From Podarcis liolepis (Eukaryota), in NCBI GenBank assembly GCA_965112155.1, contig OZ218107.1: a stretch of DNA of 64,000 nt; one strand, 5' to 3'. Below the pieces are notes generated by a model. That model saw only the letters and a list, made by a program, of their open reading frames with translations, was not told the DNA's origin and searched no databases. Positions 11,375-17,227 of the stretch are shown here, one piece after another. A program made the position numbers and the translations under genes. Positions within the stretch are counted from its first letter, which is position 1, and every line of letters starts with the position of its first letter.

Positions 11375-13142
11375 GTGGGCCTCTACGTGGAGGCTCTTTT
11401 AAATTGCTCTGTGTAACAGGTGGTGTCGCTTTGTAAATAGTGTGGGTGAGTCTGTGTTTATTGTGTGAGTTGCGTGCTTTTTAGTACACCGCTGCAAACA
11501 TCGTAAAACAAAAGTTCCAGTAGCAGGGTCAAAGGTAACCCATTCCATGTGATAAGGAGTTTATTGTGGGGTGACAGATGCTTTGTGGCAAAGTTTATTT
11601 TAGAGCAGCTTCTACACGGAAAGAGCTGCCTGAATTTGGTTCTGTTGTCTGCTGCAGAACAGCTCTGGAATCATTAGTTGAAGATGGTGGTCAAACATAT
11701 GGTGGCCTCATCACCTATAGGAACTTGTGGAGCTGCCGACAAGCTTATCATTTCTTTGAAGAGCTCCCATTTGTTCAATGGAAAAATATGCCATTGGATT
11801 ATATTCTCATTGAAATAATATACACATGGTTGACTAAAATAGGAAGACTAGGGCAGTCAACACCAGTTCAGAATCTGTGGGTCTCAGTAAATATTCCCTC
11901 AAAAGTATTCCCTCAGAAATACTCCCTCAAAAATAAAGCACAAGAAATTACTCTCTGGTTCATGCTCAGTTCCTGTTTGCACTGGCTTGGCTTCTCCTAC
12001 ATTGAACGTATCCTCTTAAATATACCCACTGGACACCAGGATTGGAGAACAACTGTTTCATTCTGAACAGAAGAGAGGTGCAAAGAGCTTCTCTCTGGGA
12101 GCAAGTGTAGCAGTGATTGACATAGGTGTGTTTTCCCCCTATGGATGGGCCGGCACGTCTGCACCATTGTGCATCCCTTTCTCTTTTCCAACAGGCATTT
12201 TGTGATATGCAACTGCCCTGTCACAGCCATTTTGTGGTATGTCACAAATACCCTGCACCCATTTTGTGGCCGGCACCCACAGCACCATCTCAAAATTCCA
12301 AATGCACTTGTGGTTCCTGAACTAGGGGGAAATATTCCAATATTTCTTTCTTTAAGAAGCAAAGCAGTTTCAATCTGCCTTTATATACTACCCTGTGAAT
12401 TGCTCGATTGTTTATCTCTTTTGAGGCAGCATGTCCAAAACTTCATTGCTGTGAAACAGTGATTCAATCTGTATTAGACAATACATTATCCAAGCCACTT
12501 TTTATATATTGCACTGTGTACAGTGAAAAATGCTCTATAAACAATCTTATAAAACCAACTGAGCAGCCTAACTGTATAGCCTCAGTGTATACTTTATCTC
12601 TTCGTTTATATAGACTGCAATAAGCAAATGCTTGTAGTGTCCTATGGGGACTGCAAATTAAATTGAAAATTGTTTTGACTTATGTGCAATGTACTGTACA
12701 GTATAAAAAACCTTCCCAAATAAACTGTAATAGCTGAGGGGGAAGATGAATTACAGCACAGAGGATAAAGTAAAAGAAGCATTGGCAATGTGTGGACCAT
12801 TTTTGGCGCTTGAGGGAAAAGAAGGCATGAGACAATGTGCATCAGATTAGAAATTAGGGCTCAGTGCCAGATGTAAGATGCAGTTTTATATATGCTTACC
12901 TGGGAGTAAGTCTCCTTGAATTAGAGAGTGTGTACTTTTGAGCAGATATGTATGATGCATTCCTACATGTACTTACCCAGGAGGAAGTGGTCATTGATTT
13001 CAATGGGAGAAAATTAAGCACATGGTTAATTCTCTCAATGGAAGAAACAGACAAATTTATATAATAGAATGTCTCTATTACAGTCTTTTGATAAAGAAAT
13101 TCCTAAGGTGGCATGCATATATATGAAATACCCTGCAAAGTC

Positions 13143-13745
13143 TATGAAATACCCTGCAAAGTCTGCCCAGCCACGTACATTGGACAAACAAACAGACGAA
13201 TAAATGCACGTATCGCAGAACACAAGAATGCCGTCAAAAAAGAAGAAAAAACTTCCTCTCTTTTCCAACACATGAAAGAAACAGGACACGAAATTAATTT
13301 TGCAGATTCCAAATTGCTCTTTAACATGGAACATCACCACAAGAGAATAATCATGGAAGCCATCGAGATAGAGAAACACCCTCACAACATGAACAAGCGT
13401 GACGACACGTCCCGCCTGCCAGACATCTGGAAATTAGCCCTCCCCACAAAAACCGACACCAGAACCAGAGGCACACAGAACGCCATCACCAATCAACCAC
13501 ACCAGACCCAAACCCAGACCCTCTCCACAGATAAATTACAGACACCATCCAGTAGCCAAACCATAGTGGCACCTCCGGATGCTGCACCCCCCTGCAATCC
13601 CTACACAGATCTGGCTGGCACAGGGCACAAAACCACAGCTCGCCCCTATACACGAAGCCAAGCCAGAGCACAACTAAGTGCAGTACAGCCATCTTCTCAG
13701 AAAAACTCTTCACAAGCTCAAGAGGTCAAGACACGAAAGCTTTAG
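13143..13745 (+). pseudogene. 5'-truncated duplicate of the PLE ORF C-terminus (GIY-YIG + tail) inside the upstream pseudo-LTR
   Basis: Translation is identical from YEIPCKVCP to KTRKL* of the full ORF. Confidence 0.9.
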
Positions 13746-13980
13746 CAACTAATCCACACCTAATGACCCACCTAAGTGGTACTCAGAATATCACTCAAGA
13801 AATCACTCAAGATATCCCTCAAGTAATTAAGGAACAAAAGAAGAAAAGGCACACTAACCTGGGAACTTCCTCTCTGCCCAGAACGTTGGAGGCTATACAC
13901 CACACCCCCTCAACAGTATTTATAGGAACTCAAACACTGAGATCCTGCTCTGTTCCAGTAACAAGAAGCCGAAAGCACCA

Positions 13981-14018
13981 GCCTGAAGATGACGAGTGAG
14001 ACCTCGTCGAAACGTCGC
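13981..14018 (+). ncRNA. Minimal type I hammerhead ribozyme, copy 1
   Basis: CUGAAGA core (13983-13989), one extra U, stem II GACGAG/CUCGUC around a 6-nt loop, GAAA (14009-14012), palindromic ACGU in place of stem III, and GUC cleavage triplet (cut after 14016). This is the architecture known for PLE hammerheads. Stem I has only ~2 canonical bp. Confidence 0.85.
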
Positions 14019-16709
14019 CTAGACACCCCAACTCTTACACGGGAAGACACCCGAAGACACCAAAACCTGCATTCCTGTACCCGTGAAAATCTACGAAAGC
14101 AAATATCTCACCTCTACGGGGAGGAAACCTTCCAGCTGACAAGAACCTACGAGAAACTAGAAATCCGAAGAGCCACCATCTTATGTGATCTCTTGTTCCT
14201 ACGCAACTGCCGAGACAACAACTTAATTCCCACATGCTTCCAACTTAAATTCCACTCTAAAACCCCAGCTACCGAAAGGATCCTGAAACGAACTGAACTA
14301 TCCCTAATCAGAAACGAAATACATAAGAAAAGATACCTACTAAACCAAACCAACAAAGATCTGCTCACTCTTCACCTCAAACTCTGTAAAAAAATCCACC
14401 CTGCACTCTGGGACAAATGCAAACAACTAGCCGTCTGGAGAGCTGAAACTGAGACCTCACATAAGACAGACAGACACACCAACAAACTCCACAAACTAGA
14501 GAAACGCCAGAAGCCCAGCCACCCTCCACAACAACCCATGAAACAAACAGTACATAACATATCAGACAGGATCCTCACCTCAACTGAAACCAAAGTACTC
14601 TCCAAAGGTTTCAACTTTGCAGTCGCCCCGAGACGCATCCCCACGGAAAACATCATATGCGGAGTCGAAGCTAGCCTAACCAAAATCAACCCAGATGAAG
14701 CCAATAAAATCAGACTTGAAGTCACCAACATCCTCTGCTCCAGCAAACCACCCAGAAGCAATTTACACAAAGAAGAACAGAAAGCACTCACCAACCTGAG
14801 GAAAGACAACAACATAATCATTCTCCCAGCAGACAAAGGTAATGCCACTGTTGTGATGAACACATCGGACTACCAAGCAAAACTATCAAATCTACTCCAA
14901 GACCCTACCTACCAACCTATAAAAACAGATCCCACCACCTATCTGGAAAAAACCACCAAATCCAAAATAAAAGCCTCTCCTATCAGTGAAGAAATCCAGC
15001 TAAGAATCATCCCCAGAGAAAAATCATCCAGATGCCCCAAACTCTACGGTCTCCCCAAGATACACAAAGAAGGAACACCACTCAGACCAATAGTCAGCTC
15101 CATAGGCTCACCTCTACAAAATCTCGCTAAATTTCTCGCTAAGCAACTTCAGCCCTATGCAGAATCCATCGCTTCACACGTTACAAACTCCTTCCAGTTC
15201 ATAGAAATAATAAAGAAACAAAACCTACATCCCGATGACCTACTTGTGAGCTTCGATGTTGTATCTCTCTTCACACAAGTGCCCATTAATGAAGCCTTGA
15301 CAGCCATTCAAAACAAATACAATCCCCCCGAATACATCCTGGACCTGACCAACCACTGCCTAACCAACACGTACTTCATCCACAATGGACAAAGATACAA
15401 ACAGATAGAAGGAGCACCTATGGGATCACCCCTCTCACCGGTCATCGCAAATTTGTACATGGAACACTTTGAAACCAATGCTTTAGACAAGTCAGAACAC
15501 AAACCCAAACTTTGGCTCAGATATGTTGACGACACCTTTGTAATTTGGCCACACGGGAAAGAAAAACTAGATAGCTTCCTCACACATCTCAACAGCCTAC
15601 ACCCCAAAATACAATTCACTATGGAAATAGAAGCCAACAACCAACTTCCCTTCCTTGACGTCCTAATCTACAAAAAACCTGATGGCTCCCTAGGACACAC
15701 TATCTACCGGAAAAAAACACACACCAACCGCTACTTACATGCACAATCACACCACCACCCTGCACAAATAAACTCCGTAGCCAAGACTCTCATCTCCAGA
15801 ACCAAACGCCTGGCTGACAAAGACCACTTGACAACTGAGTTACAGAATCTCTCAAATGTGTTAATCGCCAATGGATACCAGCAAAACAGGGTTACGAAGC
15901 TAATCCAAAAAGAAACACCCCCCAAAAACCAAGACACAGAAGAAAACAATGGCATGGCCCTCCTTCCTTATATCAAGGGCACCACAGATAAAATTAGCAA
16001 AATCCTCCATAAACACAATATCAAAACAGCCTTTTGCACCAACCAAAAAATAGCCAATATCCTCAGAAACCCCAAAGATAAAATCCAGTTGGAAAACCAA
16101 GGGGTCTATGAAATACCCTGCAAAGTCTGCCCAGCCACGTACATTGGACAAACAAACAGACGAATAAATGCACGTATCGCAGAACACAAGAATGCCGTCA
16201 AAAAAGAAGAAAAAACTTCCTCTCTTTTCCAACACATGAAAGAAACAGGACACGAAATTAATTTTGCAGATTCCAAATTGCTCTTTAACATGGAACATCA
16301 CCACAAGAGAATAATCATGGAAGCCATCGAGATAGAGAAACACCCTCACAACATGAACAAGCGTGACGACACGTCCCGCCTGCCAGACATCTGGAAATTA
16401 GCCCTCCCCACAAAAACCGACACCAGAACCAGAGGCACACAGAACGCCATCACCAATCAACCACACCAGACCCAAACCCAGACCCTCTCCACAGATAAAT
16501 TACAGACACCATCCAGTAGCCAAACCATAGTGGCACCTCCGGATGCTGCACCCCCCTGCAATCCCTACACAGATCTGGCTGGCACAGGGCACAAAACCAC
16601 AGCTCGCCCCTATACACGAAGCCAAGCCAGAGCACAACTAAGTGCAGTACAGCCATCTTCTCAGAAAAACTCTTCACAAGCTCAAGAGGTCAAGACACGA
16701 AAGCTTTAG
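13989..16709 (+). CDS. Penelope-like element polyprotein: reverse transcriptase + GIY-YIG endonuclease, 906 aa
   Basis: PLE RT motifs LPADKGNATV, LYGLPKIHK..PLRPIVS, SFDVVSLFT, GAPMGSPLSP, WLRYVDDTF, FLDV and YRKKT. GIY-YIG motif GVYEIPCKVCPATYIGQT..R..RIAEH. There is no Cys-rich linker between RT and endonuclease, which favours Poseidon/Penelope over Neptune. No stops or frameshifts. Confidence 0.95.
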   Translation: MTSETSSKRRLDTPTLTREDTRRHQNLHSCTRENLRKQISHLYGEETFQLTRTYEKLEIRRATILCDLLFLRNCRDNNLIPTCFQLKFHSKTPATERILKRTELSLIRNEIHKKRYLLNQTNKDLLTLHLKLCKKIHPALWDKCKQLAVWRAETETSHKTDRHTNKLHKLEKRQKPSHPPQQPMKQTVHNISDRILTSTETKVLSKGFNFAVAPRRIPTENIICGVEASLTKINPDEANKIRLEVTNILCSSKPPRSNLHKEEQKALTNLRKDNNIIILPADKGNATVVMNTSDYQAKLSNLLQDPTYQPIKTDPTTYLEKTTKSKIKASPISEEIQLRIIPREKSSRCPKLYGLPKIHKEGTPLRPIVSSIGSPLQNLAKFLAKQLQPYAESIASHVTNSFQFIEIIKKQNLHPDDLLVSFDVVSLFTQVPINEALTAIQNKYNPPEYILDLTNHCLTNTYFIHNGQRYKQIEGAPMGSPLSPVIANLYMEHFETNALDKSEHKPKLWLRYVDDTFVIWPHGKEKLDSFLTHLNSLHPKIQFTMEIEANNQLPFLDVLIYKKPDGSLGHTIYRKKTHTNRYLHAQSHHHPAQINSVAKTLISRTKRLADKDHLTTELQNLSNVLIANGYQQNRVTKLIQKETPPKNQDTEENNGMALLPYIKGTTDKISKILHKHNIKTAFCTNQKIANILRNPKDKIQLENQGVYEIPCKVCPATYIGQTNRRINARIAEHKNAVKKEEKTSSLFQHMKETGHEINFADSKLLFNMEHHHKRIIMEAIEIEKHPHNMNKRDDTSRLPDIWKLALPTKTDTRTRGTQNAITNQPHQTQTQTLSTDKLQTPSSSQTIVAPPDAAPPCNPYTDLAGTGHKTTARPYTRSQARAQLSAVQPSSQKNSSQAQEVKTRKL

Positions 16710-16944
16710 CAATTAATCCACACCTAATGACCCACCTAAGTGGTACTCAGAATATCACTCAAGAAATCACTCAAGATATCCCTCAAGTAATTAAGGAACA
16801 AAAGAAGAAAAGGCACACTAACCTGGGAACTTCCTCTCTGCCCAGAACGTTGGAGGCTATACACCACACCCCCTCAACAGTATTTATAGGAACTCAAACA
16901 CTGAGATCCTGCTCTGTTCCAGTAACAAGAAGCCGAAAGCACCA

Positions 16945-16982
16945 GCCTGAAGATGACGAGTGAGACCTCGTCGAAACGTCGC
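16945..16982 (+). ncRNA. Minimal type I hammerhead ribozyme, copy 2
   Basis: Identical to copy 1 and 2964 nt downstream; predicted cut after 16980. Confidence 0.85.
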
Positions 16983-17045
16983 CTAGACACCCCAACTCTT
17001 ACACGGGAAGACACCCGAAGACACCAAAACCTGCATTCCTGTACC

Positions 17046-17227
17046 NNNNNNNNNNNNNNNNNNNNNNNNNNNNNNNNNNNNNNNNNNNNNNNNNNNNNNN
17101 NNNNNNNNNNNNNNNNNNNNNNNNNNNNNNNNNNNNNNNNNNNNNNNNNNNNNNNNNNNNNNNNNNNNNNNNNNNNNNNNNNNNNNNNNNNNNNNNNNNN
17201 NNNNNNNNNNNNNNNNNNNNNNNNNNN
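17046..17227. other. Assembly gap (182 N)
   Basis: Run of N that hides the PLE 3' end. Confidence 1.

Follow-up and report, generated by a model that had tools for sequence, protein, structure and literature searches.

The hammerhead ribozymes of Penelope-like elements (PLEs) have been described as minimal motifs with an unpaired nucleotide 5′ of stem II, together with a dimer model (PMC4209133). In the same study, these minimal hammerheads were found to cleave poorly, and it was proposed that cut PLE RNAs may be ligated into circles acting as more-than-unit templates (PMC4209133). A layout in which the AUG lies inside the hammerhead has already been published for one such element, Poseidon_Ac (PAc) of Anolis carolinensis (Mob DNA 2024, PMC11167929). 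Here we analyzed a related element of the lizard Podarcis liolepis, contained in a stretch of 64,000 nucleotides (assembly GCA_965112155.1, contig OZ218107.1; hereafter the window, from whose first letter positions are counted, all features below being on the + strand).

The biochemistry of PAc gives the closest frame for reading this locus. Cleavage of the PAc hammerhead is abolished by the changes C3G or G8C, is partly rescued in the double mutant, and requires the PAc protein, which is active when made from the in-core AUG (PMC11167929). RNAs with a dead hammerhead insert normally in vitro; reverse transcription starts internally, at +111–118 of the open reading frame (ORF), the genomic tail spans approximately +85 to +119, and no RNA sequencing (RNA-seq) reads begin or end at the cut (PMC11167929). 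Among other PLEs, Naiad and Chlamys form the same tandem insertions with pseudo-long terminal repeats (pLTRs) without hammerheads (PMC8557442). Lastly, for the non-coding retrozymes, an origin in PLE pLTRs and mobilization by PLEs are presumed (PMC7229834; preprint 10.64898/2026.07.22.740005).

With respect to this literature, the novelty of the locus had been overrated in its preliminary description: the idea of a circle as template for PLEs dates from 2014 (PMC4209133) and that of an AUG inside the hammerhead from 2024 (PMC11167929). What is added here is the clade-wide occurrence of the in-core AUG, the different frames in which the surrounding RNA is read, the positions of the copy ends, and a family ORF that outruns its own repeat unit.

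The start codon and the hammerhead core

The element encodes an ORF of 906 amino acids (13989–16709), in which translation and domain search identified a conserved N-terminal domain, a reverse transcriptase (RT), and a GIY-YIG endonuclease. Its start codon (13989–13991) is composed of the core nucleotide A9, the unpaired U 13990, and G10.1 at 13991 of a minimal type I hammerhead (hammerhead 1, 13983–14016). An in-frame TAA (13959–13961) lies 30 nt upstream of the ATG, and no further in-frame Met occurs before residue 184 (14538). An identical hammerhead 2 occupies 16947–16980 and carries a second copy of the ATG at 16953; the two predicted cut sites delimit a complete unit of 2,964 nt (14017–16980). 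This arrangement had been reported in the preliminary description, and every coordinate of it was confirmed.

The hammerhead consists of the core CUGAAGA, a 6-bp stem II with a single unpaired nucleotide (U 13990) on its 5′ side as in the PLE type, a 6-nt loop II, GAAA, and a palindromic ACGU helix III. The full core (C3-U4-G5-A6-N7-G8-A9 ... G12-A13-A14 ... U16.1-H17) is present, with C17 at 14016, and helix III has 1 bp with a palindromic loop A-CG-U (14012–14015), a dimer-type feature. The motif CTGAAGA-T-GACGAG/TGAGAC/CTCGTC-GAAA-CG-TC has two matches in the window against zero expected from shuffles. Self-cleavage is predicted after C 14016, and the architecture matches that of the PAc hammerhead, whose cleavage is published (PMC11167929).

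The Rfam hammerhead models gave no match, either at the gathering threshold in the whole window or at E ≤ 10 in 13900–14100. This is expected because curated models require a real helix III, which the minimal hammerhead, with its single base pair, does not offer. The sole Rfam match in 13900–14100, Gl_U4 (E = 2.3), was rejected as due to chance. Folding the junction as a single strand recovered stem II with a z-score of −0.56, a value uninformative for such a motif, and the unconstrained self-cofold did not give the dimer, a result that is not decisive for a 4-bp helix. Overall, the assignment to the minimal (dimeric) type I hammerheads of PLEs is supported.

At the protein level, the TERT-like RT domain was clearly recognized (RVT_1, E = 4e-15), while the GIY-YIG match was weak (E = 0.0011, under the Pfam cut-off); the endonuclease columns G705, Y707, C711, C714, Y718, G720, R724, and E778 are invariant across 17 families. 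The N-terminal domain (LYGE ... FLxRCRD..IP) is also present, including the motif FLRNCRDNNLIP, to which the preliminary description had drawn attention and which coincides with columns that do not vary in the family alignment (C74, R75, and P81). More generally, residues 35–183 are conserved across the 17 families (Y43, G44, L68, F70, L71, C74, R75, P81, and others), and residues 2–9 have no conservation at the protein level. Since residues 35–183 are conserved and no other in-frame AUG is able to express them, the messenger must carry the 5′ half of the hammerhead. The in-core AUG being the sole AUG for the N-terminal domain, an RNA cut at that junction cannot be its mRNA.

The closest proteins are those of Podarcis muralis (98% identity), Vipera (83%), and the Anolis Poseidon (PAc-type, P0019; 45%). 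In a quick maximum likelihood (ML) tree, built without named Neptune or Nematis references, the window ORF falls with P0019 in an 18-row group with a Shimodaira–Hasegawa-like approximate likelihood ratio test (SH-aLRT) support of 99%. The identity of the element as a Poseidon-type PLE is supported, and its earlier description as a PLE with a minimal hammerhead was borne out by the core, stem II, helix III, the RT and GIY-YIG domains, and the grouping with PAc in the tree. As a side observation, two NCBI models annotated as "uncharacterized proteins," P0001 (Podarcis muralis) and P0002 (Vipera latastei), represent this retroelement in chimeric or truncated form, with foreign exons spliced onto one of them and the start of the other (P0002) falling at the position that corresponds to Met184.

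Distribution of the in-core AUG among relatives

The preliminary description had made its proposal depend on the in-core AUG staying in frame in related elements. We found it in frame in nine families, with DNA available for the window, PAc, and one metagenomic locus (L072). In the protein, the in-core AUG leaves a footprint, L-[K/R/T/M]-M (from CUG-ANG-AUG), followed by six to eight variable residues and then by KRR or ETS; these two endings are the same RNA, GAAACGUC, read in two frames (K-R-R or E-T-S) that are set by the length of stem-loop II. The footprint occurs in the window ORF and in P0003, P0006, P0019 (PAc), P0022, P0024, P0026 (from a beetle), P0034, and P0035. Two further families, P0017 and P0018, start at another Met just ahead of E-T-S or K-R-R, a position that is also upstream of the cut. 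From M to K/E the residues vary freely, unlike the parts fixed by the core, and therefore the first ten codons are dictated by the RNA and not by the protein.

In the ML tree, a branch supported at 99% (SH-aLRT) separates all nine families with the in-core AUG from 13 rows in which the ORF start is not in the hammerhead core; a hammerhead was seen 5′ of the ORF in seven of them, and the start codon lies after the cut in six and in helix III in the seventh (L071). As judged from these sequences, the AUG-in-core is an inherited trait of one PLE clade, neither common to all PLEs nor specific to one copy. Within the clade, its conservation may be incomplete. The metagenomic loci nearest to the window (44–51% identity) are mostly 5′-truncated or decayed at the junction: L072 is one decayed P0034-like copy whose hammerhead is altered at two core positions, and L065 has its join within loop II. 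Relatives were also searched for among viral contigs, where none was found.

The metagenome set included 80 loci and yielded 33 hammerheads. The nucleotide before stem II is single and unpaired in all of these PLE hammerheads (33/33), being U in about 14, A in about 15, and C in 3. In eight loci (L007, L010, L011, L012, L021, L022, L041, and L064) the first in-frame ATG is located approximately 25–75 nt after the cut, and in L071 it lies inside the CATG loop of helix III. Two of these loci had no clear placement: L007, whose short ORF kept it out of the tree, and L064, which has its ATG after the cut and yet fell on the side of the in-core families.

A separate observation concerns L010, L014, L015, L018, L021, L024, L025, and L052, where the core CTGATGATG holds two consecutive in-core ATGs. 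In L021, a short upstream ORF begins at these ATGs and terminates shortly past the cut, with the main ORF starting further downstream; this upstream ORF would be removed by cleavage.

Copy ends, transcripts and the working RNA

To read the family beyond the single copy of the window, one bulk stranded RNA run, two single-cell RNA runs, and one contig set (part of each run) were mapped to 13745–16700. The family is transcribed, mostly in sense, and depth has its maximum over 13943–14140, followed by a four- to five-fold drop. Within the tail interval (14072–14108), family copies end at 14072 (+84) and at 14101–14108 (+113 to +120), running into (TA)n-like flanks. A tail of 30–40 nt, with 3′ ends within the following ORF copy and AT-rich targets, is typical of PLEs, and the family conforms to it. 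These ends lie 56–92 nt beyond the cut site and, by homology with PAc, probably mark the sites where reverse transcription starts. Because the copies end beyond the cut, the templates must cross an uncut or religated hammerhead. No pile-up of read starts or ends was found at 14016/14017, and neither position occurs among the listed begin and end sites or the listed loose ends (74 further loose ends being outside that list). The mapped reads contain no splice joints close to the 5′ end. Some copies in these reads depart from the element immediately upstream of 13983 and have their ends at 14072 or 14106, as fits short 5′-truncated products primed at the tail sites.

Taken as a whole, the locus is one PLE insertion of the Poseidon clade, a partial tandem in which roughly 1.3 units are followed by the beginning of a third. 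The complete unit is preceded by a 5′-truncated one (13140–14016), a pLTR in the wide sense, which spans the C-terminal portion of the GIY-YIG region, the pLTR, and hammerhead 1 and differs from 16104–16980 by one base in 877 (13749/16713; 99.9% identity). Downstream, the first 65 nt of the third unit (16981–17045) reach +93 of its ORF and are followed by an assembly gap (17046–17227, N), inside which, beyond readable sequence, the 3′ end of the insertion falls. This pLTR-forming partial tandem is the arrangement expected of a PLE, and it holds two intact hammerheads inside a single insertion. At the 5′ junction, read from the sequence, an extra 21-nt direct copy (13123–13143) of the first bases of the truncated unit (13144–13164) is preceded by an AT-rich flank (ATATAT); the duplication (13123–13164) looks like a template jump on a GTCT microhomology as reverse transcription ended.

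The ORF of the window copy ends at 16709 owing to a one-base deficit at 16677–16679 with respect to most family copies, which shifts its last ten codons. The extra base just behind 16677 is present in 21/25, 15/15, and 17/20 reads, and in the contigs likewise; P0001 follows that other frame. When translated on the window sequence itself, with no base inserted, the frame used by most family copies (16679–16963) is open through the whole pLTR and stops at the TGA 16961–16963, in loop II of hammerhead 2, 8 nt after the ATG at 16953. The equivalent open frame in the upstream unit spans 13715–13999 (TGA 13997–13999). Across the pLTR there are no stops in the family frame against seven and five in the other two frames, and shuffling left the family frame open in 278 of 20,000 cases (1.4%). 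Most family copies, then, carry an ORF of about 2,976 nt on a unit of 2,965 nt, that is, 11 nt longer than their own repeat, and therefore no unit-length linear RNA can encode it. We found no sign of protein-level constraint on the C-terminal extension: five of six common pLTR variants are non-synonymous, and none makes a stop. An ORF longer than the unit is compatible with tandem read-through and with a circle alike, and it gives a sharper form to the old rule by which a single unit does not make a PLE competent.

An uncut junction is required for translation, the AUG being upstream of the cut site, and also for target-primed reverse transcription, which is primed downstream of that site and from there copies back across the hammerhead. 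Since both uses need an uncut junction, the working RNA would be the more-than-unit read-through transcript, and we consider it likely (probability of about 0.7) that this linear RNA serves as both messenger and template. The pLTR/ORF junction would then be one compact multi-purpose RNA element, combining the hammerhead (−6 to +28) and the AUG with the first nine codons; homology with PAc adds a protein-binding region that includes two RT start sites (about +84 and +118). Cleavage would be conditional, requiring the own protein of the element, as in PAc, and a second hammerhead, as the motif implies. When it occurs at the 5′ junction, it would remove the cap, the AUG, and nine codons, which would end the life of the RNA as a messenger.

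Some points weigh against this reading. Helix I of the window motif has only two Watson-Crick pairs beside the core (G14017-C13982 and C14018-G13981), where the PLE type has 4–5 bp. In seven of the nine families the in-core AUG is read from the protein footprint, and about half of the N-terminally complete relatives give no clear footprint. Random-primed and single-cell RNA-seq may under-report 5′-OH and cyclic-phosphate ends. Lastly, the messenger-ending role of cleavage is one that we infer.

According to the preliminary description, cleavage could switch the RNA from messenger to template. On this view, the unit cut at both ends (14017–16980) would be the retrotransposition intermediate. 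The part concerning translation stood: by sequence logic, a cut RNA is untranslatable from the in-core AUG and cannot be the mRNA of the N-terminal domain, and in PAc it is the RNA-binding protein that triggers cleavage (PMC11167929). The part in which the cut RNA is the template did not, since a unit cut at its 3′ hammerhead has lost the priming site that family copies use at +84 and +113 to +120, the insertion of the window holds two uncut hammerheads, PAc hammerhead mutants insert normally (PMC11167929), and none of the listed copy boundaries falls at 14016/14017. As regards the 3′ junction, this switch is largely refuted, and overall we regard it as unlikely. Alternatively, the unit, cut at both hammerheads, could be closed by a host ligase into a circle, restoring the continuity between AUG and ORF for translation and acting as a rolling-circle template for the tandem insertions. 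If cut units were ligated in this way, the family ORF, running from one hammerhead core to the next loop II, would make a coding circle of about 3 kb in an autonomous vertebrate retrotransposon, read for one full turn plus 11 nt and also used as rolling-circle template. The chemistry of the ends would be compatible, retrozymes do likewise (PMC7229834), and more-than-unit circular templates were proposed for PLEs in 2014 (PMC4209133); a circle would also account for the absence of linear ends at the cut, for templates crossing the hammerhead, and for the overlong ORF, which a tandem fits equally. However, the circle has no direct support, junction reads from a circle and from tandem DNA being identical, and tandems do not need it, as Naiad and Chlamys form them without hammerheads (PMC8557442). 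Moreover, PAc uses linear uncut RNA in vitro (PMC11167929), minimal PLE hammerheads cleave poorly (PMC4209133), and translation of a circle needs cap-independent initiation, for which no internal ribosome entry site or similar start is known here. Such a circle, translated and also used as template, appears to us improbable.

It could also be that the overlap of start codon and ribozyme is incidental, in which case translation would really begin at Met184, at a codon other than AUG, or on a spliced RNA, and the stretch of 183 codons at the start would not be protein. The NCBI model of the Vipera relative (P0002) does start at the equivalent of Met184, and the lack of protein conservation at residues 2–9 goes in the same direction. 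Nevertheless, residues from about 35 to 183 carry invariant columns in 17 families, active PAc protein is made from the in-core AUG (PMC11167929), the in-core AUG recurs in nine families and in two frames, and the mapped reads have no splice joints near the 5′ end, which makes an incidental overlap very improbable.

Three other features of the reads are reported here on their own. Joints that "go back" from 16698/16700 to 13745 were considered as evidence for a circle and rejected, being an artefact of 8 letters omitted from the mapped stretch. At 13977–13983, the match of two read sets to the element begins only with the hammerhead; upstream of it, the 8 reads of one set and the 7 of the other have a single uniform sequence per set. 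Such reads likely represent short copies made of hammerhead and tail, or a non-autonomous relative whose pLTR differs. In addition, some single-cell reads end in a constant, adapter-like ...CCCATTGCGCAAT at 16556–16559, 16490, 15859 (antisense), and 15547 (sense), which suggests RNA 5′ ends, mostly of antisense transcripts starting in the 3′ part of the ORF.

Comparison with known systems

The lizard element most resembles PAc. Both have a single ORF (N-terminal domain, RT, and GIY-YIG) in tandem units; an A9-U-G10.1 start codon with the cut approximately 26–27 nt downstream, a 6-bp stem II, and an ACGU helix III; copy ends at about +85 and +119, AT-rich targets, and no RNA-seq ends at the cut. 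They differ in sequence (about 45% amino-acid identity) and in unit length (2,964 nt here and 2,667 nt in PAc). Stem-loop II is 1 nt shorter in the lizard element, where GAAACGUC is read K-R-R, while in PAc it is read E-T-S. Furthermore, most family copies here read through the pLTR into the next hammerhead, whereas the PAc ORF stops 126 nt before it. The biochemistry exists for PAc, and the lizard family is known here from sequence and reads. With an in-ribozyme start and tail limits of +85/+119 common to a family only 45% identical, the PAc layout is not peculiar to Anolis.

With the minimal PLE hammerheads of Cervera and de la Pena (2014, PMC4209133), the window motif shares the conserved core, the long stem II, the 1-bp helix III with a palindromic dimer loop, and the location in the pLTR. 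In that description, however, the unpaired nucleotide is not tied to a start codon, and only one clade uses it for the AUG. The distant PLE loci L010, L011, L012, L021, L022, and L041 (about 30–37% identity) carry the same type of hammerhead just 5′ of the ORF, but their ATG follows the cut and the cut RNA keeps the whole ORF. The clade with the AUG in the core and the PLEs with the AUG after the cut offer a natural experiment, as cleavage should destroy the messenger in the former and spare it in the latter.

Metazoan non-LTR retrozymes (PMC7229834; preprint 10.64898/2026.07.22.740005) are likewise tandem units, each with a type I hammerhead. They are 170–400 nt long and non-coding, cleave efficiently, and accumulate as circles, whereas the lizard unit measures 2,964 nt, codes for 906 amino acids, and has a weak minimal hammerhead; being neither small nor non-coding, it is not a retrozyme in that sense. 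Finally, the hepatitis delta virus (HDV)-like ribozymes of R2 and other non-LTR elements (cited in PMC4209133 and PMC13725137) are also self-cleaving ribozymes at the 5′ ORF junction, tied to processing and translation. In those elements, cutting takes place ahead of the start codon and releases an RNA that can be translated; in the lizard element the cut lies downstream and would destroy the messenger.

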